Numbered from the stretch's first letter, positions 18,357 to 34,530 are shown. The stretch: DNA of 64,000 bases from Monocercomonoides exilis PA203 (GCA_001643675.2 LSRY02000017.1:1240001-1304000); one strand, 5' to 3'. Made by a program: numbers and translations. Notes: generated from the sequence alone by a model not told the origin.

Positions 18357-18843
18357 AACTTTTTGAGTTGTGAAATGGTGTTGTTAGAAGTTGAAAACGA
18401 AGTTTTGAAATTCACAAAAATTGCCAGTATTTTTGTTAAAGATTTGAACATTATTTTTATATTGTTCGTTATTAATTGGAATATGTTTCGTTCTTTTACA
18501 AAAATTGATTTTTGCTTTTTCAAATTGATTTTAGCATTTCTGATTTAAATATTTGAAAGATTGAGCATTTTATATGAATAAATATTGTCATTCTTTTCTT
18601 TCCTTTTGAAGGTCTTTTCTTTGAAACGTTCTGATTTAAAATTGCATAAAAATCTTGTACAAAACCAATTTTATTCACCATTTTTGGATTGTCAATAACT
18701 CCTTAATAGAGTGGTTTTTTAAACCTGACTTTTTTTTTAATCCGGACAAAATTTTGAAAAATAAATATCTCAACAAATATTCAATATTAATTTTCATCAA
18801 TTTGCACAGTTGTGTATTAACAGGCATGACATCTGTTCATATA

Positions 18844-19853
18844 GGGTCAACTTTTTAATGGGACTTTTTCCTTTATTGGCACTTTTTTTATTTTCGATAA
18901 CAAAAAGCTGAGAAGTGTTAAATGGCTTTCAGCATTTGGATAACTGATTTTAACAAAGTTGATTCTATTTATTACCGGTTTGTTTTTTAATTTTTGTTTA
19001 TTATTTAACGAGATATGACGTTTTTTTTGATAAATTTGAATTGGCTTTTCCCACTCAACCAAGCATTTCCAGAAAATGAAAAATACTGTTTTCAAAAGCA
19101 CTAACTTTTATCTATATGTTTTTTAATTCTTTTTTTTGACAAACATTTTTTCCGTGTTATTTTTGCATTTCATTTTTTTAACAACATGCAAACATAAAAC
19201 TGATTGTTTCTTTGTAAATATAATGAAATGATGAAAATAAAAATATGATATGAAAATAAAACATTCAAATAATGAAGTATTGTCAAAATACAACATTGTT
19301 TTTTTCTATTTGTATAGAAAAGCCAAATGGTACAAATAGAAAATGATCTTCGATCAAACTTTTGTTATTTTTATGAGTTCAAGACAAATAAAAAAAAACA
19401 ATGTTGTATTTTGACAATACTTCATTATTTGAATGTTTTATTTTCATATCATATTTTTATTTTCATCATTTCATTATATTTACAAAGAAACAATCAGTTT
19501 TATGTTTGCATGTTGTTAAAAAAATGAAATGCAAAAATAACACGGAAAAAATGTTTGTCAAAAAAAAGAATTAAAAAACATATAGATAAAAGTTAGTGCT
19601 TTTGAAAACAGTATTTTTCATTTTCTGGAAATGCTTGGTTGAGTGGGAAAAGCCAATTCAAATTTATCAAAAAAAACGTCATATCTCGTTAAATAATAAA
19701 CAAAAATTAAAAAACAAACCGGTAATAAATAGAATCAACTTTGTTAAAATCAGTTATCCAAATGCTGAAAGCCATTTAACACTTCTCAGCTTTTTGTTAT
19801 CGAAAATAAAAAAAGTGCCAATAAAGGAAAAAGTCCCATTAAAAAGTTGACTT
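18844..19853. mobile_element. ~1-kb foldback/MITE-like element: 468-bp inverted arms (18846-19313 / 19384-19851), 70-bp spacer, TA flanks
   Basis: Arms are near-perfect reverse complements (identical 84-aa ORFs are called on opposite strands). TA at 18842-43 and 19854-55; terminal GG vs TT mismatch. Confidence 0.9.
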
Positions 19854-19855
19854 TA

Positions 19856-22021
19856 GACAGGGACAAAACCCGGGACATTTGGTACAGTTTTCTTTTCTTT
19901 GAAAAATGCTTCGATTAATAAATATTCACCTTTTAAATAGAATTATTTTTTTGCAAGAAAGAAGGAAACAAACAAGAGTAATTTGTTTTATATTCCTTTA
20001 TGATATGATAGAAAAGAAGTTTGATATCAAAAGAGGAACGAAAAAAAACAGTTCAAAATAGAAAGAAATAATTGTTAACATTAAAAAGAAATAATTTGCA
20101 CCTCATAAAAAGAATTATGAATCGAAAACAAAAACTGAACCCCATTTGCTTTCTGAAGTTTTCTTTCTTTTTCTTTTCTCGCTTGGAAACAGTATCTCTT
20201 CTTCCAAAGCGTTTAATTGCATTTCTGGATTTTTTGTTGTGTCAGACATTTTGAAAGAAACCTCTTCACGAAATGTAGTTTTCTTTTTTTGATCTTGAAA
20301 GTTGATACTTTCATCAGGAACAGAAATGTCAGATTTTTTGTTCGTAATATTGTGTGATTCCTTTTCACAAGATTTTAAGACCTCATGTTGAGTATCAGAG
20401 TGAATCATTGTGCTTTTTTTCTTAATCTCTAATTGAACTGAATAGCTTTCGTAAAAGTGTCTCCAGTGATTAGTTTCATACTGATGTTATTGGTTAACCC
20501 TGAGCAATTTGATTCATTCACGTTTTCGATTTTTTCTGAGATTTTAGGAAGACACTGATAGACCACAGATGGATCGAACGGATGAATTCCACAAGCTTCA
20601 AATGACTTTCTCACTATTCTCGGAGATAGAGAGTCGTATTCAGCTTCTAAAACAGCAGGAATCAATGCTTTTCTGCACGAAGAAATTGATGAATCAGTTG
20701 GCATCAAAAATTCACGTTTCAAGCTGTTTTTAAAAATGTGCAAAAACGAACCTATCCAAAGGTTGCGTTAAGTGAGTAGTGCGGGATGGAAGAATTGGAA
20801 GATGGATGTTGTGTTTCCTGCACCAAGAAATAACAGGTTGGCAAAATCGAGATGAATGACCGTCGAGAATAATTAATGCGAAAGAAGATGGCCCGTGTAG
20901 CAAACTCGTTTCTCATTTATTTTAGGCAAAAAATCTTCAATCATAATTTTTTCAAAATCATACTTGCTCATCCAGCCAGTCCCGTTTACAATGCAGTTTA
21001 TTCGATGGTTCTTTAATTCCTTCAAATCTTCAGACAGCGTCTGAGATGGCCACAACATCACAGGATCCAGTGATGTTCCATCTGCAAAAATTGTGAAAAA
21101 TAATGTCGCATTTTTCCTTCGCTGGACTTCTGGCAAGAGAGCGTGCTGAGTTTCTTTTGTTACTCCGATTTCATCTTCTGACTGTTTCATGGTGACTCCT
21201 GTCTCATCCATATTGATTATCAAATCTGAAGAAATATGAAAATCATCAATAACATTTTTTAGAAGACTAAACCAATTTCTCATTTTTTCGATGTTCGAAG
21301 CTTTAAGTCGATGTATGTCTATGTAAGTTGGTTTTATTAGTTTTAACAATCCGCTTTTTTTTATAAACCTGCCAGCCCATTTTGTATTAATATTGTGACA
21401 CTCCAAAGATGGAACGCTTTTCTTATTTTTTTTCATCATGATATTTCCTGTCTATCAAATAATACCTAGTTTAAAAAACATTATCTAAATAAATCACACG
21501 AATTTTATTATATCCGAAACTGTTAATTTGTTGGATGAAGATTTTTGAGCTCTTGCACAGTCTTCAATTTCCTCAATTTCTTCTTTATTAAATAACCCTG
21601 GTCTGCCCGAGCAGTGAGGATCTCTCCCAGCCTTTATTGATGCTATATGCCTGTAGATGAATGAATGAGAAATGATTTTTGCTTTAACCAAATCTGAAGG
21701 TTTGATTTTGTCTTGTTTTAAAAGATAATCAACTTTTTCTGCTTTTGAAGTGAGCCTGCGAAACTCTGCCGATGCCTTGATAGGAGATAATTTATTGGAA
21801 GAGAAAGAGGATGACATGTATGAATTTTTAATTTGATCAATGGAAACTCGATCATGCAATTTGATAAAAGTTCTTTTTAAAGAAGCAAATTTTTTTTAAA
21901 AGTGAACAAAGGATTTAATCAAAAAAAATATATTGTGTGTCAATTTTTAATTTGCGACTGCTTTTAATAAACATTCAAAAAAGTTATTTAAGACTGAAGT
22001 GTCCCGGACTTTGTCCCTGTC
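19856..22021 (-). mobile_element. pogo-like (Tc1/mariner superfamily) DNA transposon, 2166 bp, ~25-bp TIRs, TA target-site duplication
   Basis: Left end GACAGGGACAAAACCCGGGACATTT; reverse complement of right end GACAGGGACAAAGTCCGGGACACTT. TA on both sides; contains a DDE transposase. Confidence 0.92.
20429..21859 (-). pseudogene. pogo/Fot1-type DD35D transposase (HTH/CENP-B-like + DDE_1), one 48-nt intron (21452-21499), two frameshifts (~20895, ~20730)
   Basis: Motifs SGRPGLF, KWAGRFIKK, INMDETG, IILDGHSSR, LPSRTTHLTQPLD and SFEACGIHPFDP; 35 residues lie between the 2nd and 3rd Asp. Exact start codon uncertain. Confidence 0.88.
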
Positions 22022-22023
22022 TA

Positions 22024-22285
22024 TATGGGTGATTATTTTTGAAATCATATTTGTTCTTTCAAAAATTTCGGTTCGAAAATTTTCTCTTTATTATCAACAA
22101 AAGAGCACAAAAAAATGAAAAGGTTTATTGAAAACATCAACATCTTTATTTGAGCATAGACATTTATTTTTAATACAGTTGTGAAAAATACACAAATTGC
22201 AGACAAAAACTCTTCCCAATGACATACAACCTTTGAAAAATAAACACTCCGAAAAAAGTTATGATTTCAAAAATAATTACCCATA
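22024..22285 (+). mobile_element. ~262-bp MITE copy 1 (TIR TATGGGTGATTATTTTTGAAATCAT)
   Basis: Ends TATGGGTGATTATTTTTGAAATCAT / ATGATTTCAAAAATAATTACCCATA; internally colinear with copy 3. Confidence 0.85.
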
Positions 22286-22548
22286 TGTGTGATTCTTTTT
22301 GTAATCATAACTTTTTTCGTTGTGATAATTATTGGGAAAATTTTTTGAAATTGAAAATGAATTCATCAATGAAGAATGAAAATCATTTCAATTCTATCAA
22401 AAATTAATATTTGATAAAAAAGAAAGACAGAGACGGTTTTTATAGGATTTGTCACTTTTCTGTGTTCATAAACTAAAATTTTTAAACAAAATAAATAAAC
22501 AGAATTATATGTACAAAAAAAAATTTAATTTAAAAAATAATCATCCAA
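22284..22548 (-). mobile_element. ~265-bp MITE copy 2, inverted and more degenerate
   Basis: Starts TATGTGTGATTCTTTTTGTAATCATAACTTTTTTCG (reverse complement of the copy-1 right end); ends ATTTAAAAAATAATCATCCAAA. Confidence 0.6.
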
Positions 22549-22765
22549 AAGTCATTCTTTTATTTTTACAACATTTCACGATATGTTTGTGTTGTTATTT
22601 TCCGCAGATTTTGAAAATCTCGTACCCAAACAAACTCAAAAAAAAACAATAAGCAAAATAATAATTTTGATTTCAAGAAATAAGAAATGGGGTTTTTGTT
22701 ATTAATAAATGTGAAAGAAGAGAGTGAAAACTGCAAATGTCACACTACAATAAATTTAAAAAAAA

Positions 22766-23028
22766 TATGTGTGATTATTTTTGAAATCATATTTTTTCAT
22801 TCAAAAAATTTGGTGGAAAAATATTACTTGAATAGCAATAAAAAAAATTGAAAAGTGAAAAGGCTCATTGAATACATTTTTGTCTTTGATTCGGAAAAAC
22901 CATTTGTTTTTAAAAACAATTATCACACTTTTTCTCTTTTTTAAATAAAATATTTTTTCAGAAAACAAACAATTATTGAAAAATCAACACCCCGAAAAAA
23001 GATATGATTTCAAAAATTATCACCCATA
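22766..23028 (+). mobile_element. ~263-bp MITE copy 3
   Basis: TATGTGTGATTATTTTTGAAATCATAT ... ATATGATTTCAAAAATTATCACCCATA; alignable with copy 1 along its length. Confidence 0.85.
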
Positions 23029-23030
23029 TA

Positions 23031-23831
23031 CAGTCAAAACTGGATATAATCACGTCGAATATAATCACATTCGTTAATTGTCACATTTTTCGATGCACCG
23101 ACATTTTTGGCCTATTTTTCGTTAATTCTCCATCGCATATAATCACAGGGCTAAATATTATATAATCACATTTTTTATTAATATGGGTGATTTTTTCATT
23201 GAAAATAAAATTTCCTGATCAAAATTTCGAATATTCAGACTTATTTTAAGATACAGATTGTGCAAAAAAGACCGGCCAAGATCAATTTCTCAATAACCAC
23301 AAAAGGAATAATTCTGATAAATTTTCTCAAAACATATCTCATCAATATAAACTCATTTAATATACGAGACTTTCAAAACAGTTTCATTTGCGCTCAGAAA
23401 TAAATAATTATTAAAATTTCGGAGAAACTTGATTTTGAATTTCTCCGAAATTTCAAAAATTGATATTTCTGAGCACAAATGAAGCTGTTTTGAAAGTCTT
23501 GTTTATCAACTGAGTTTGTAATGATGAAATATATTTTGAGGAAAATTATCAGAATTATTCCTTTTGTGGTTATTGAGAATTTGATCTTGTCCGGTATTTT
23601 TTGCACAATCTGTATCTTAAAATAAGTCTGAATAATGTGTATTAATGATAAATAGTGTTGATTTTTTCGATAGATGTGTGCTAATGAAAAATAATTAAAA
23701 TGGAAAAATAGGCTCTAATTTTATTGATTAATTTTTTTTTTCTGTGAAAAGCAATATTGTATATATTCACAATCGGATATAGTCACAAAAAGTTGTGCAA
23801 AAACCAACGTGATTATATCCAATTTGGACTG
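23031..23831. mobile_element. Non-autonomous CAGT-ended Tc1/pogo-type element, ~27-bp TIRs
   Basis: CAGTCAAAACTGGATATAATCACGTCG vs reverse complement of right end CAGTCCAAATTGGATATAATCACGTTG. TA on the left, CA on the right; internal ATATAATCAC repeats. Confidence 0.85.
23234..23632. mobile_element. Nested 399-bp foldback MITE with ~120-bp inverted arms, TA flanks
   Basis: TTCAGACTTATTTTAAGATACAGATTGTGC... pairs with ...GCACAATCTGTATCTTAAAATAAGTCTGAA; TA at 23232-33 and 23633-34. Confidence 0.88.
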
Positions 23832-23877
23832 CAATCCTGTAATAAAAAATTGTTTTTTTCATTTACAGAAAATGTTC

Positions 23878-23878
<1 letters not shown>

Positions 23879-23919
<41 letters not shown>
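23879..23919. repeat. poly-T tract (~41 nt)
   Basis: Visible homopolymer. Confidence 0.9.
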
Positions 23920-23920
<1 letters not shown>

Positions 23921-24535
23921 TGACAGACGAGGATTCATGTGATTTGTCAGGTCACAGAGGTATATTTTAAAGTGTTATTATCAAATTAAAATTAAAAATT
24001 ATTTTGTCACTTCATTTTTCAAAAAGACCTCTCACGTGGAATGAATCGCAGATGTTTGGCTTCTCGTTTTGAAGTTGTTTGTCAAGTATCAATTAAAAAA
24101 AAAAAAACAGCTGAGCGTTCAAATGAGATCAACAAATGAATGTTATCAGAATTGGCAATTGTTTGATAATTGTTTAATCGAAAATGTTGTCTTAATTTTT
24201 TAAAAGTTCCTTTTGTTTTATTTCAGGTGAAAACAAAAATTGTGAAATTTGATGAAAATTTCGTTCCAAAAAATCAAAAGTTTCCAGAATAGAAACAATA
24301 ACATTTTCAAACTTTTATTTCCATTCAAGAAGCATTTAGTGAAATGGAATAAAAATTTGATGAAAAATTTCAATTTTTATTTTAACCTGATTATTAAACA
24401 AAATGAACTTTTTAAAAAAATTCAGCAAATATTTTGCTGCTATGCGTATTTACTCATTTTCATAAATTTCAGTTTTCATTGAAAAAATATTTGGTTTATT
24501 TTTCAAATAGAGAATGAATACGAAAGATTTTCACA

Positions 24536-24719: not shown

Positions 24720-25013
24720 TTCGAATAGTCCAGCTTCTCACGAAAGCTCAAAGCGAAGGACTTAAAAACTCCGTACTTTCACCAAATAAGAAATTGCATT
24801 CTTTTCGAAATTCTTATTATTTAATGTTAGTGATTTCACTTTTCTCCAAAATGAAAAAAAAAAAAATCATTGATGGGTTAAACTTAAAATTTAAAAAAAT
24901 ATTTTACAAAAAAAAATTGAAAAAAAAAAGAGGATCCTATTAATTTTTAATTTAGTAATTTGGACAAATAAAGATATCAATTAAGAGTGAAAAAATTAAA
25001 GAGTTTCTTTTCA

Positions 25014-26437
25014 TCAAACATTCACAAAGTAATCAGAAATATTAATTGGCAAATGAATAAAATATTCTTTGCTCAAATAATTAAATGTTTCATGAAGGCT
25101 AATAATTATATCTTCATATCCTTCTTTTTCCATTTTTTCAAATATCTCTTTTTTTATTAACTTTCTTTTTGGTTCGTATGTTTTAAAATCCTCCATTCTT
25201 TTTAATTTTCTTGAAATCATCAAATAGAAATTCAAGCAATCACATAAAATTTCACCATTTGATGTGGATTGAAGAATTTCCTCAAAAATCAAATCAACTG
25301 CCCCACCTTTCAACAAGTCATTAATTTTAATAACTTCAATTTCCGCTGCTTTTCTTAATAAATGAATGCATTGCTTACTAATTTCTCTGTGATCATCCCT
25401 TGATGCTCGAAATGCCTTAACAATGATGCTAATAAGTTCAGCATAACCCTCATTCCACAAGTGACAAAATTCAAAGTAAAGCGCCAACGTTTGAAACCAT
25501 CTCATCAAAGCAATCACTTCTTCCCTTTCTATTTCTCTCTTCCAATCGACACAACACAATAGCTCATCCAATTCTCTTGCTGCCTCTCTCACAAAACACA
25601 ATTCATTCACAATCATACCTTCCAAATTATTATCGTTGAATAATCTATTTATCAAAAATTGCCAAGCAGATTGATAGGCAAGTCGTTTCAGATTGTGATA
25701 CTCTTGATGATATTGGATGATCTCTTTGATTTCATTCAGATACAATTCTTGTTCCATAAACTTATGAAAATATTGTGAAAAAATTGAAAAAGAAACGTAA
25801 AATTTCACACTTCCCAATATCCAGCGCTACTCATTACCATCAATGCAGTTTCCACTTCATTCTGAGCTTCTTCGCTTTCCTCTTTCTTCAAGGCAACTTT
25901 TATGAGGCAAGGGATACAAATCGGCATTAATTCTGCTGAAATTGTGTTGATAAGAAAAAGATAGCATTCGCAGAGTTCAACTAAAAGCTTTTCATTTTTC
26001 CCTTCTCTTCTCTTTTCTTCATCAATAATCGTCTTCTTTAAACTTTTGCTCAACGAAGTTTCTCCAAAGTGCAGACTCCATACACATTTCATTTCTTTCC
26101 AATATCCAATAAACTTTAGCAAAATACATGTATTTTCAATGGACATTCTCCGTTTTTTTAACATTTTATGCGTTTTATTGAAAAGTACTTCTGTAAAAAC
26201 AGATTTGAATTCTTCTTTGTCCATCTCTTCCATTAATCTATTCGTCTCTTCTATTTTCTGTTTCTGCTCTTCCTTTTCACAATGCTCCAATTCATTAAAT
26301 AATTCTTCCAAAATTTAGGAAATATATCTTATAAAGTTCTTTCAAACAATAGAAAAAATTCACAAACTTGAAAACTTATCTCTGAGTGATAGCTCCTGAG
26401 TATCATCATTGGATTTGTCTTCATTGCACATTTCCAT
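25014..26437 (-). CDS. Member of an expanded helical (ARM/HEAT-like) hypothetical protein family; exons 26437-26368, 26304-25811, 25760-25014
   Basis: Two GT-AG introns join the ORFs. Strongly similar to the 31646-33140 paralog (EQKQKIEE, EGKNEKLLV.LCECY, EIKEIIQYHQ, LAYQ.AWQFL, EGYEDII.S, ISDYFVN). Confidence 0.85.
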
Positions 26438-31645: not shown

Positions 31646-33140
31646 ATGATATGCGGATTCAATACGAATTACGAATATTCGTTGTTTTCCGTCTGCAATG
31701 TGCTTTCAAAAATGCAGGCAACGAGTGAAACCGAAAGGTTAAATGGTTTGTGCTCATTATTGCATTTGAATTCATGATTATTGGATTTCATTTATTCTAT
31801 CTTTTCATAAAAGAAATGTTTTCTGAATTTGAACGTTGCACTGTCGTTGAACAGAAACAGAAAATTGAAGAAATGAATGGAATAATAGACGAGATGGACA
31901 AAGAAGAACTTAAATTCGTTTTCGCAACAGAGATGTTCAATAAAATCCACCAAATAATTGAAGAAAAGAAATTATCAATGGAAAATGTAATTTTGCTATT
32001 GAAACACATGGGATATTGCATTAAGCTGAAAGGAGTTTATGTTAGTAGCTATGAAAAATCTTCGTTGTGCAAAAGATTTGAGAAGATGATTATTGAAGAA
32101 GAAAAAGAAAAAGAAGGAAAAAATGAAAAATTGCTGGTTGATCTTTGTGAATGTTATCCTTTATTTTATGACGAATGCACGGACATTCCAGAAACAATAA
32201 TTGGGATTTGTGGGAAATACCTTATGAAAGCAGCATTGAAGAAAGAGGAAAACGAGGAGACACAAAAAGAAGTGGAAATTGCTTTGATGGCTTTGAGAAA
32301 CCTTCATGAATATTCTGTGTGAGAATTTCTATTTCATTTTTGATATTATTGATATGCCCCCTAATTTTTAATTAGAAATCGGATAAAGAAATATATACAT
32401 GCGAGATAAAAGAGATCATTCAATATCATCAGAAGCATCATAACCTAACATCGCTTGCTTATCAAACAGCTTGGCAGTTTTTGATTAGCAGATTTTACTA
32501 TGGAGAAATCTTGGAAGTTGTTATTGCAAATGAGCTTCATTTTGTGAAAGAGGCAGTAAAAGAACTGGAAGAGCTTGAGAAGTGTGTGGATTGGAAGAGA
32601 AAAGAAGAAGGAAAAAAAGAAAAAGAAAACAAAAAAGAGCTTCTTTTGATAAGATGGCTGGGAACATTGGACGGTTTCTTATCTTCATGCGAATTGTGGA
32701 ATGAAGCGTATTCTGGGCTTATCAGCAGCATTACTCAGGTACTTCGAGCAGCAAAAGTGAATAATGGGGGAATTGGCTGGTGGTGTATTAATTTGCTTAA
32801 AAGAGCAGTTGATAGCAGTTCTGTAAAAATTGATGACTTACTGAAAGGAAGAGCCATTGATGCTGTTTTGGAGGCGATTCAGAGGGTAACATTGGATAAC
32901 AGTGAGGTAAGTGAAAGCATGCATTTCTTTCTCTTATTTCAAAAACAATTCAAAAAAGTGGAGGATGACGAGATCGAAAAAGAAAAAAGAAAGGCGTTGT
33001 CAAAGATCATTGAAAAGATGGAAGAAGAAGGATATGAAGATATCATCACAAGCTTTTGTGAATTACTTCATTTTCTTTGGGTAAATAAATGTTATCGACA
33101 TTTATCGTTGGATATTTCTGATTATTTTGTGAACATTTAA
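31646..33140 (+). CDS. Second member of the same expanded hypothetical family; exons 31646-31745, 31814-32316, 32376-33140 (start could be 31712)
   Basis: Introns lie at the same positions and phases as in the 25014-26437 paralog; shared motifs. Confidence 0.85.
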
Positions 33141-34530
33141 GGAAATGAGATGTTACATATTTTGAAACTCAAAAATTTCTTTCTTCTTCTTCTTTTCTTT
33201 ATTAAAAATCTTCTTCAAATGATTCGTCCTCTCAAAGTTTCATAAAAAGAATTAATATGCACATGTATATTTTTCGACTTCAGCAACATTTTCTCTTCTC
33301 TTTTGAACAATTTGTGCTCTTCGGATTTTTCCTTCACTTTCTCATAATCGACAAGTCTTCATTGAACTGAAGAAGAGAAATCAAAACCCAATGATGAAAA
33401 GATGATTTGTGAAATGAATGCGATTGATAAGATAAAGATGCTTTCTTTTGGTGTTTGAAGAGCTGACTGTAGCTTCTCAACCATAAAAGTTCAATTGCTA
33501 TTAAAATATCTTCTTCCAATATTACTCGTCAAACAGTCAACAAGAAAATAATATCTTCAGCCAATTCCGAATGAGAAAGAGAAAAGAAGGCTTCACAAAA
33601 AACGAAGAAAAGAAATACATTTTCAACAAAACAGGTTTTTATTTCCAATCCAAAGGCTTTTATTTGCCCTTATTGTCATCATTCTTCAGCAGTTCAGTTT
33701 CTTCAAACAGCACAAATTAATTTTTAGAATTGAATGTTCACAAAACTGCTCAATTCAACAGTGGTTGAAACAATAACACCTGATTGATATTCATCCTCTT
33801 TCTTTGAGGATGATGATAGAACTGAAAAGAAAGGAAGAGCAATTTGAAAAAGAAGAAGAAAAAAGAAAGACAAAGAATAATCAAAAAGATTGATGTTATT
33901 CTTCTTCCTCCTCCTTATTTGACAATGTTAATTCCTCATTTTCCCCCTTTTCCATGAAAAATTAATGAAATCTATATTTTTCAGGAACATAGCTTGCTGC
34001 TTTGATTTTTATTTGAAAGAGAAAATTTCCTTCTGTAATAGTAATGATAATTTTCAATTTATCACGGATTATAACAAATCCTCTCATCAGCACATACAAC
34101 TCTATTTTAGCTTCTTTCCTATTTATCATATTTTAAGATAAAAGCAATGATCGAAGTTCCACCTTTCACATATCTTCTCCAGCTATTTCGTTAAATATCA
34201 TGTTTGTTCACAAAAACAAATAGAAAATTCTCTTCCATTCAAGTCAATTTAAATATCCAACAATGTTTAAAACAATCATTATTTAAAAAGACACAATTCC
34301 ACCTTTTTCATAAAAAAATTTTTCGAATCTTCAACAAAATATGGGTGCATTTATTGAAATTGGGATTAATTAGATCAAGTCGATTATAAAGTTTGTTTAA
34401 AATTAGTTATTTTGTTGGTAAACATCATAATTTTAATATCGTTTCACTACAATTCTCGTTATCTTTATTCTTTTTAAAAAATATACTGAATCTAAATTTT
34501 TTTTCTGATTTTTTCGATGAATTATGTTAG

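Follow-up and report, generated by a model that had tools for sequence, protein, structure and literature searches.

A transposon stack in an AT-rich island of Monocercomonoides exilis and its likely origin on one alternating-TA run

Composition of the stack

The window, a stretch of 64,000 nucleotides from the genome of Monocercomonoides exilis PA203, contains seven small elements of five families, arranged end to end within one stack (Table 1), and the ends of these elements were set by comparison with other genomic copies, not from the stack locus alone. A foldback element (FB), a pogo transposon and MITEs A and B' follow one another directly, after which a unique stretch breaks the chain before it resumes with MITE C and the CAGT element, in which a palindromic MITE is nested. 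The stack is situated in a 9-kb island of 24-34% GC that is flanked by GC-rich coding DNA.

Table 1. Elements of the stack and the duplication words between them, in positions of the window
Feature	Position	Strand	Description
Left remnant ATATA	18839-18843		probable rest of an ancestral (AT)4 run; last TA (18842-18843) is the left duplication of FB
FB	18844-19853		1010-bp foldback (palindromic), non-autonomous, duplicates TA
TA	19854-19855		single TA, right duplication of FB and left duplication of pogo
pogo	19856-22021	-	2166-bp DNA transposon; 22-nt terminal inverted repeats beginning GACAGGGACAAA
TATAT	22022-22026		right TA of pogo (22022-22023) overlaps left ATAT of MITE A (22023-22026) by one base
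MITE A	22027-22282		256 bp, GGGTGAT ends, ATAT/ATAT duplication
ATAT	22283-22286		target duplication common to MITE A and MITE B'
MITE B'	22287-22546		260 bp, decayed copy of the GGGTGAT family
Spacer	22547-22764		218 bp: decayed target copy of B', AAAA (22547-22550), and 214 bp of non-repeat DNA
MITE C	22769-23025		257 bp, GGGTGAT family; ATAT at 22765-22768 and 23026-23029
ATATA	23026-23030		right ATAT of MITE C overlaps left TA of the CAGT element (23029-23030) by one base
CAGT element	23031-23831		Tc1/mariner-like MITE, duplicates TA; right flank CA (23832-23833)
Palindromic MITE	23254-23611		358 bp, CAGAT...ATCTG ends, TA at 23252-23253 and 23612-23613

The initial annotation had described unrelated TA-targeting elements of four different terminal-repeat families, joined through single shared TA dinucleotides with no host DNA at four named junctions. 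At least four unrelated families are indeed involved, five when the nested palindromic MITE is counted, and the four junctions consist of target-duplication bases only. A single shared TA is found between FB and pogo but not at the other three junctions, which are longer or overlapping duplication words, and the premise that all elements target TA is wrong, because the GGGTGAT MITE family duplicates 4 bp. The pentanucleotide TATAT that links pogo to MITE A also links a pogo to a 4-bp-duplicating element at locus L023 and is mirrored at L003, while a shared ATAT is seen at four other pairs of MITEs, all of which are independent events.

It is very improbable that the stack is an assembly concatenation of repeats, or one unit that moved or duplicated as a whole. 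The assembly derives from Nanopore sequencing and the region is made up wholly of repeats, which would favor such an artefact, but each element has its own matching duplications, TA on either side of FB, pogo and the palindromic MITE and ATAT on either side of MITEs A and C. A false join would not yield these, and they point to sequential, real insertions. The 5-kb block does not recur as one composite unit among the genomic matches to its elements. The closest pairing of an FB with a pogo, on contig C22, is of different subfamilies, with 72-73% identity and 42 bp between them, and the neighboring copies in the stack are at least 9-10% diverged from every other copy.

The element families and their target sites

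The arms of the FB element (18846-19305 and 19392-19851) are perfectly complementary, with the right terminal CC reading TT, and these 460-nt perfect arms argue that the copy is young. More than 40 copies with 72-91% identity share the common ends GGGTCAAC...GTTGACCC, and since they read TA/GGGTCAAC...GTTGACCC/TA, the bounds first given for FB, with TA on both sides, are borne out. TA adjoins 63 of 88 exact FB ends, nine of these 63 (14%) having TATA against a background of 6% (p=0.013).

The transposase of the pogo element is encoded on the minus strand, where it is disrupted into no fewer than three frames, with open reading frame pieces at 21494-21859, 20873-21439, 20730-20903 and 20429-20743. 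A 57-aa piece matches the Pfam domain PF03184 DDE_1 (E=6.5e-7, 29.5 bits against a cut-off of 22), and, read directly, its D residues in LDGHSS and QPLD are 35 residues apart, a DD35D spacing; a 188-aa piece carries the motif NMDETG. The Pfam search with the 121-aa N-terminal piece gave no match, the reading frame of this copy being broken in at least two places. The terminal repeats of 22 nt differ by two mismatches. The window copy is flanked by TA on each side, as are 34 of 38 outer ends of related copies, in agreement with the bounds proposed earlier. The outer ends of pogo copies continue into TATA in 34 of 38 cases, compared with 6% in the background (p=2e-37), and the reconstructed targets are TATATA in 15/16 and ATATATAT in 9-10/16. 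The pogo lineage thus hardly occurs outside such sites. The only exception to TATATA is the copy in the window, which becomes canonical if FB came after pogo.

Members of the GGGTGAT family end in GGGTGAT...ATCACCC. Identical flanking 4-mers were found in 12 of 14 copies (nine times ATAT, and AAAT, TCTT and AGTT), and paired ends also give AGAT, AAAT and AGTT duplications; at 51 of 100 ends the duplication is ATAT, a word that makes up 7-9% of ANNT words. The search with MITE A gave more than 1000 candidate matches, the nearest copy being 90% identical. This duplication moves the first MITE to 22027-22282 from the 22024-22285 originally given, and the last MITE ends at 23025 instead of 23028. 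The element beside MITE A had been called an inverted copy sharing its terminal TA. The two do share a duplication, ATAT and not TA, but B' is so decayed that its orientation cannot be told: its left end is 82% and its right end about 76% like the family end, its right duplication, now AAAA, is decayed as well, and its interior matched none of the other copies. The 214 bp of non-repeat spacer DNA likewise had no match in any fetched locus. In another family, G5 (GGGGGAAAATAC), the ends are preceded by ATAT, ATGT, ACAT or ATTT, again a 4-bp duplication. By this AT-rich, AWWT-like duplication the GGGTGAT and G5 MITEs appear Sola2-like, in accordance with Sola2 elements having short terminal repeats and AWWT duplications of 4 bp (ATAT, AAAT, ATTT; PMC3627910). 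In these MITEs ATAT is the commonest word, and AAAT, AGTT, AGAT and TCTT also occur; the likeness to Sola2 is one of duplication.

The CAGT element keeps the bounds and the left TA first assigned to it, but on the right it is followed by CA instead of TA, and it is a composite: a MITE of about 440 bp (the family length is about 450 bp) is split by a nested insertion. CAGT termini, CAGTC...GACTG, have 249 exact ends genome-wide; TA stands at about 80 of 100 ends, and 17 of the approximately 80 TA-flanked ends (21%) have TATA against the 6% background (p=7e-6). The nested palindromic MITE has TA in 5/5 copies. The 20 bases on each side of it (23232-23251 and 23614-23633) mirror each other exactly, and the left mirrored arm is absent in six other CAGT copies. 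FB, the CAGT element and the palindromic MITE all duplicate TA, have terminal inverted repeats and lack coding capacity, as non-autonomous elements of the Tc1/mariner type do, and their termini are unlike the ends of the window pogo.

Abutment of element ends in the stack and in the genome

It had been proposed that transposon ends, or the bases of hairpins, are targeted as a safe harbor, and that repeated insertion at such sites is unlikely by chance. The first proposal fails when the abutment of whole families is counted. Exact-match FB ends abut a known element end in 0-1 of 88 cases (about 2% with the window copy and a copy on contig C10), CAGT ends abut another element in 1 of 100, and ends of GGGTGAT MITEs in 1-2 of 100. 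CAGT ends lie inside other elements in at least six of 100 cases, and this ratio of nested to abutting ends, at least 6:1, is roughly that of internal to flanking TA sites, so that it is as the share of TA sites predicts. The two most abundant families, the palindromic and the GGGTGAT MITEs, form four facing pairs within 30 bp genome-wide, one of them gap-free. The 1-kb FB with its perfect arms almost never has a neighbor at the hairpin base, and hairpin bases are not insertion hot spots. No family has a large share of its copies at the proposed target, pogo alone reaching 4/16, and transposon-end targeting is not a family habit.

The second proposal holds for the stack, which is unusual and beyond naive chance; across the families abutment is rare. 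As a null model, seven insertions were placed in the reconstructed 4.6-kb island with the target preference measured for each family and uniform use within the island, and an unweighted version was also run. For this locus, which was chosen post hoc, at least two gap-free junctions arose in 1% and at least three in 0.03% of trials, and four in 0/6000. The TA-run bias of FB and CAGT is mild, so that each of the two junctions they form has a probability of 1-2%. Present-day runs of (AT)≥4 are mostly empty, 2-3 of 55 sampled runs abutting a MITE, and therefore such runs are not saturated hot spots. Sequence preference alone under-predicts the stack, and a site-level effect, from selection or from true attraction, may act beyond it.

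In true attraction TA-type transposons, above all pogo, would prefer the TA beside the terminus of a resident element. They could be drawn there by proteins sitting on the ends or by DNA that is distorted where an extrudable inverted repeat has its base, and ordered trains without gaps would result. We consider it unlikely, although several counts besides the simulated islands speak for it. In the fetched loci three pairs of facing termini lie 8-50 bp apart and five pairs 51-400 bp apart, a higher density at the shorter distances, and ten MITE-MITE pairs within 30 bp compare with an estimated expectation below one under uniform genome-wide placement; the distribution of MITE-MITE gaps, again by estimate, fits the availability of ATAT. 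Four of 16 pogo copies lie beside a 4-bp-duplicating element via a TA run, while roughly 1-8% would be expected from the 93 unoccupied sites at which TATATAT directly meets GGGKG, the approximately 10,000 TATATAT words of the whole genome and a regional factor of about 2.6. The binomial probability is about 1e-6 at an expectation of 0.5%, 0.007 at 5% and, as an estimate, about 0.02 at 6-7%. Against attraction stand the low abutment of the FB, CAGT and MITE ends, the nesting of CAGT, the single gap-free junction between the two most abundant and unrelated families and the nearly empty FB hairpin base. The geometry of pogo also stands against it, since the distance of pogo from the MITE end is that set by the center of ATATATAT, becoming 5 bp in the longer run of L004. 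Insertion at the central TA of ATATATAT explains this geometry. In loci not picked for adjacency, all other gap-free junctions join a pogo to a 4-bp-duplicating element via a TA run that extends on the host side (L003, L004 and L023), which favors the reuse of a TA run.

Reuse of one TA run as the probable origin

The stack most likely arose from a taste for alternating TA shared by the families and from the reuse of one ATATATAT site, not from the recognition of ends, and would then be a nest of transposons that began on a single short run of alternating TA, within an island poor in genes and rich in AT; we give this reading a probability of about 0.55. When FB and pogo are taken out, each with one TA, the sequence GTTC-ATATATAT-GGGTG is obtained beside MITE A, and the empty site would have read GTTC-ATATATAT. 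The restored ATATATAT is the only one in the 6.2-kb pre-insertion island, in which it is one of three TATATA sites.

The two Sola2-like MITEs, B' and then A, would have inserted first, with ATAT duplications, on the right margin of the run, where a 4-bp duplication leaves the entire run intact on the other side. Pogo would then have taken the TA in the middle of the run that survived, which automatically places it three bases from MITE A, and FB would have come last, using the TA freshly duplicated by pogo. About 740 bp away the CAGT MITE and MITE C may have used overlapping TA and ATAT words of an ATATA site, and the palindromic MITE would have landed within the CAGT element afterwards. This order of arrival is suggested by parsimony and arm identity. 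As every newly inserted element ends up with a copy of its target word, TA or ATAT, on either side and all the families prefer these words, gap-free junctions would follow, with the hot spot regenerated beside every newcomer. A retention bias may add to this, as a new insertion next to an older one falls in DNA that has already proved to be dispensable.

Selection could also have acted alone. Insertion would then be blind, most TA runs of the compact genome would lie in promoters or untranslated regions, and only inserts beside or inside earlier, dispensable ones would persist, the trains being the survivors. About 63% of chromosome length in M. exilis is coding, and repeats are concentrated in low-coding, repeat-rich stretches that alternate with coding regions (PMC8767320). 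The stack itself is situated in an AT-rich island between coding DNA, and abutment exceeds its expectation most for pogo, at 2.2 kb the largest element and the likeliest to be harmful elsewhere. However, the placement at ends and not in interiors is left unexplained, as both should be equally harmless to the host, and we regard selection alone as a doubtful explanation. It is similarly doubtful that cut-and-paste transposons of M. exilis, at least the pogo lineage, prefer those TA runs that abut resident ends. Resident termini would in that case be beacons for landing and give rise to trains that have no gaps and spare the genes, a stacking by sequence plus context.

The preferred reading, reuse of a TA run, can be compared with known insertion systems. 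Sleeping Beauty inserts at the TA in the center of ATATATAT, and the wild type uses this octamer in 2-3% of insertions, while 21-39% of the insertions of the engineered variants K248R and H187V are in the octamer and tighter variants keep out of exons through sequence alone (PMC8934666). Passer, a different pogo, has a preference for AAGTACTT (PMC9976928). The M. exilis pogo lineage resembles Sleeping Beauty in duplicating TA and using the central TA of its target, and resembles the engineered variants in that its preference would by itself steer insertions away from coding DNA. It differs in being a natural protist pogo (DD35D) and not a Tc1 element, with a preference far tighter than that of the wild type, although its counts are of fixed copies, to which selection may contribute.

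The retroelements Ty3 and, in Dictyostelium, TRE show target-specific stacking at tRNA genes. Neither a tRNA gene nor any Rfam RNA was found in or near the stack, and the window is without a tRNA gene; the landing zone here is a sequence word, unlike the gene feature used by these retroelements, but as in their case one small landing zone is reused and ordered, nearly gap-free trains result. In plant genomes, nested and clustered MITE 'multimers' were reportedly described by Jiang and Wessler in 2001 in Plant Cell, formed mainly by insertion inside other MITEs. As in these multimers, small elements gather in or beside each other and their own sequence and duplications supply the target word, but in M. 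exilis they are joined end to end via shared or overlapping duplications, and two superfamily types take part, one duplicating the 2-bp TA and the other the 4-bp ATAT.

Structure of the stack and its reconstruction

The stack sits in a 9-kb island with 24-34% GC and GC-rich coding DNA on both sides, in an assembly of 82,301,135 bases and 101 contigs. The Nanopore assembly of M. exilis PA203 is described as 82.3 Mbp in 101 contigs with 46% repeats, mostly unclassified, and repeats in this ~63% coding genome are concentrated where coding is low (PMC8767320). All element ends were set from copies elsewhere in the genome and not from the window locus; the initial annotation was mostly right, but its coordinates were corrected, one family proved not to duplicate TA and the CAGT element proved to be composite.

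Elements of the stack, with window positions and the bases joining each to the next element
Element	Position	Characteristics	Junction
Foldback (FB)	18844-19853	family of ~1-kb foldbacks, TA-GGGTCAAC...GTTGACCC-TA	TA, to pogo
pogo	19856-22021	transposase on minus strand; terminal repeats start GACAGGGACAAA; TA on both sides	TATAT, to MITE A
MITE A	22027-22282	GGGTGAT...ATCACCC family	ATAT, to MITE B'
MITE B', decayed	22287-22546	GGGTGAT...ATCACCC family	
MITE C	22769-23025	GGGTGAT...ATCACCC family	ATATA, to CAGT element
CAGT element	23031-23831	~440-bp TA-duplicating MITE interrupted by palindromic MITE; right flank CA	
Palindromic MITE nested in CAGT	23254-23611	358 bp, TA duplicated	

Four junctions had been described as devoid of host DNA, and only duplication bases are indeed found at each. 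They had also been described as single shared TAs, which is true of the FB-pogo junction alone: A and B' have a 4-bp duplication in common, and at the pogo-A and C-CAGT junctions a TA and an ATAT overlap by one base. B' and C are separated by 218 bp of unique DNA, including AAAA, the decayed right-hand target copy of B'. The elements keep matching duplications on both sides, so insertion one after another is favoured over a false join made during assembly. Origin by composite or segmental duplication was rejected since no second copy of the whole block was found in the genome, and the block was not found recurring as one unit. An FB and pogo pairing on C22 involves other subfamilies with 42 bp between them, and four other MITE-ATAT-MITE dimers are of differing subfamilies and orientations; the joined MITE pairs are independent events.

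When FB and pogo were deleted in silico with one TA each, GTTC-ATATATAT-GGGTG was obtained, and the octamer ATATATAT remained when A and B' were removed, each together with one ATAT. The same octamer after each removal indicates that a single (AT)4 run received all of the first four elements. ATATATAT occurs once, and TATATA at three sites only, in the island of 6.2 kb as it was before the insertions. The best account of the stack is reuse of this (AT)4 hot spot, where each insertion would regenerate an (AT)4 hot spot next to itself.

Over 460 nt the two arms of FB pair without a mismatch. Its last two bases (19852-19853) are TT, although CC would be expected from the family and from the left end of FB itself; gap repair after Tc1/mariner-type integration re-synthesises these two positions. 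Three FB-family copies (C8:1684855/1685880, C22:796864/797892 and C80:1698965/1700901) are flanked by inverted repeats of at least 30 nt, so that the foldback is the apex of a larger palindrome. The pogo transposase is broken, with one piece matching Pfam DDE_1 with DD35D spacing. In pogo subfamilies at ~72% identity (L008-L016, L021-L023) an 18-nt terminal motif, CCGGGTTTTGTCC.TG.C, is tandemly doubled at both ends.

Target preferences of the families

Not all of the families target TA, as had been supposed, since the GGGTGAT MITEs duplicate 4 bp: 12 of 14 copies have the same 4-mer on both sides, and among these 4-mers are AAAT, TCTT and AGTT, which are not palindromic. Among the 100 ends listed for this family, ATAT comes next in 51 and T is at the fourth position in 95. 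This pattern of duplications fits the AWWT duplications of Sola2 (PMC3627910). A further abundant family, G5, has the ends GGGGGAAAATACGGACTTTCAAGC and 4-bp A..T duplications. The fetched loci, 0.3 Mb in all, contain ~10 copies (L003:1476-1495, L006:1105, L009:45, L015:677, L018:1105 and others), and another site is C8:1226499; G5 and the GGGTGAT MITEs probably belong to one superfamily.

Background word rates were taken from ~0.3 Mb, that is, the window and fetched loci. All families lean to alternating TA, FB mildly (TATA at 9 of 63 TA-flanked ends, p=0.013), CAGT at 17 of ~80 such ends (p=7e-6), and pogo almost exclusively, with TATA after 34 of 38 outer ends among all related copies fetched, where the background rate is 6% (p=2e-37). 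The reconstructed pogo targets, a small sample of 16, comprise 15 with TATATA and nine with ATATATAT. The sole non-canonical target is that of the window copy, and it becomes canonical if FB came after pogo, an order that fits the perfect arms of FB and the decayed ends and reading frame of pogo. For the stack as a whole the proposed succession is B' first, then A and C, then pogo, with FB last. Wild-type Sleeping Beauty has a weak ATATATAT consensus, which is strong in engineered variants that thereby avoid exons (PMC8934666). Specificity of the (TA)3-4 type was engineered in Sleeping Beauty to spare genes, whereas in the pogo lineage of M. exilis it is natural and near-absolute. The locus documents such a lineage in a protist with mostly unclassified repeats, together with abundant Sola2-like 4-bp-duplicating MITE families and TA-duplicating foldback elements.

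Adjacency of elements and sequence preference

The initial annotation proposed that transposon ends are targeted as a safe harbour. Checked family by family, the proposal is not supported for FB, CAGT or the GGGTGAT MITEs, whose ends abut other elements in 1-2% of cases, and it may apply to pogo alone. None of 88 exact FB ends clearly adjoins a known element end (one candidate, a CAGTG-type sequence, is on C69), and abutment is ~2% once the window copy and a C10 copy beside a MITE-like end are counted. One of 100 listed CAGT ends adjoins another element (G5, C8:1226499) and at least six are nested in MITEs, CAGT elements or palindromic MITEs, roughly the proportion in which TA sites occur inside elements and at their flanks. 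For the GGGTGAT MITEs one or two of 100 listed ends adjoin another element. Ten MITE-MITE facing pairs lie within 30 bp, four with a common ATAT and one joined by ATATAT; by our estimate this spike is as expected, because the duplication is the preferred word itself. Palindromic and GGGTGAT MITEs face each other within 30 bp in four pairs genome-wide, one of them gap-free. An argument from mariner ends as integration hot spots in vitro was dropped, since no major hot spots are reported for Hsmar1 (PMC3544897).

There are 3508 octamer windows of (AT)4 or longer genome-wide. These runs are mostly empty, with only two or three of 55 sampled adjoining a MITE and most flanks unique, and for this reason saturation of (AT)4 runs as hot spots was rejected. 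In four of 16 copies pogo lies beside a 4-bp-duplicating element, namely MITEs in the window, L023 and L004, and G5 in L003. From 93 unoccupied TATATAT-GGGKG sites, a total of ~10,000 TATATAT sites as extrapolated from the window, and a ~2.6-fold regional enrichment of MITEs around pogo copies, we estimate that 1-8% of pogo copies would be expected to do so. The binomial p for four of 16 goes from ~1e-6 at a rate of 0.5% to 0.007 at 5%, and is estimated at ~0.02 at 6-7%. We also simulated seven insertions into the reconstructed island with the measured preference of each family. Out of 6000 trials 15% gave at least one gap-free junction, 1% at least two and 0.03% at least three, while four were obtained in none. 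In loci picked irrespective of adjacency, the density of facing termini is also higher between 8 and 50 bp than between 51 and 400 bp. The simulation and the pogo excess indicate that sequence preference alone under-predicts the stack, to which retention bias or real local attraction may add.

If the simple reading of hot spot reuse is true, the locus is a clear example of how gap-free trains can arise without dedicated targeting machinery, the hot spot being renewed through the preference for a target word and the duplication of the target site. If the residual excess, i.e. pogo beside MITE ends and the four junctions, is true end attraction, DNA transposons would have a safe-harbour targeting of a new kind.

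Surroundings and mirrored flanks

Stacking anchored on tRNA genes was rejected, as ARAGORN found no tRNA gene in the 64-kb window and Rfam no RNA family in its 15-30 kb part. To the right of the CAGT element, at 48 bp, is a run of ~42 T (23880-23923), next to which a short repeat (23892-23966) is present also in L023 and L043. A 1.3-kb repeat at 24979-26313 and 31849-33148, with 66% identity between the two copies, matches several fetched loci, and its ORFs, of 267 and 168 aa, are on the minus strand. A Pfam search with ORFs of the repeat at 24979-26313 gave no match; a gene family or an element of no known class could be represented here.

Next to the nested palindromic MITE, 20 bases on the left (23232-23251) and 20 on the right (23614-23633) mirror each other exactly. 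In six other CAGT copies only the right-hand version is present and the left arm is absent; therefore the mirroring took place during the insertion or later, when the right flank, copied in inverted form, replaced the left. Landing of the MITE at the tip of an older hairpin in CAGT was rejected, since the surrounding 42-bp palindrome is not ancestral. The mirrored flank is a small-scale palindrome extension, of which quasipalindrome correction or template switching might perhaps be the cause. Elsewhere, a MITE-like copy (L025:3075-3316) has ATGA on its left and TCAT on its right, a flank that is mirrored and not duplicated.
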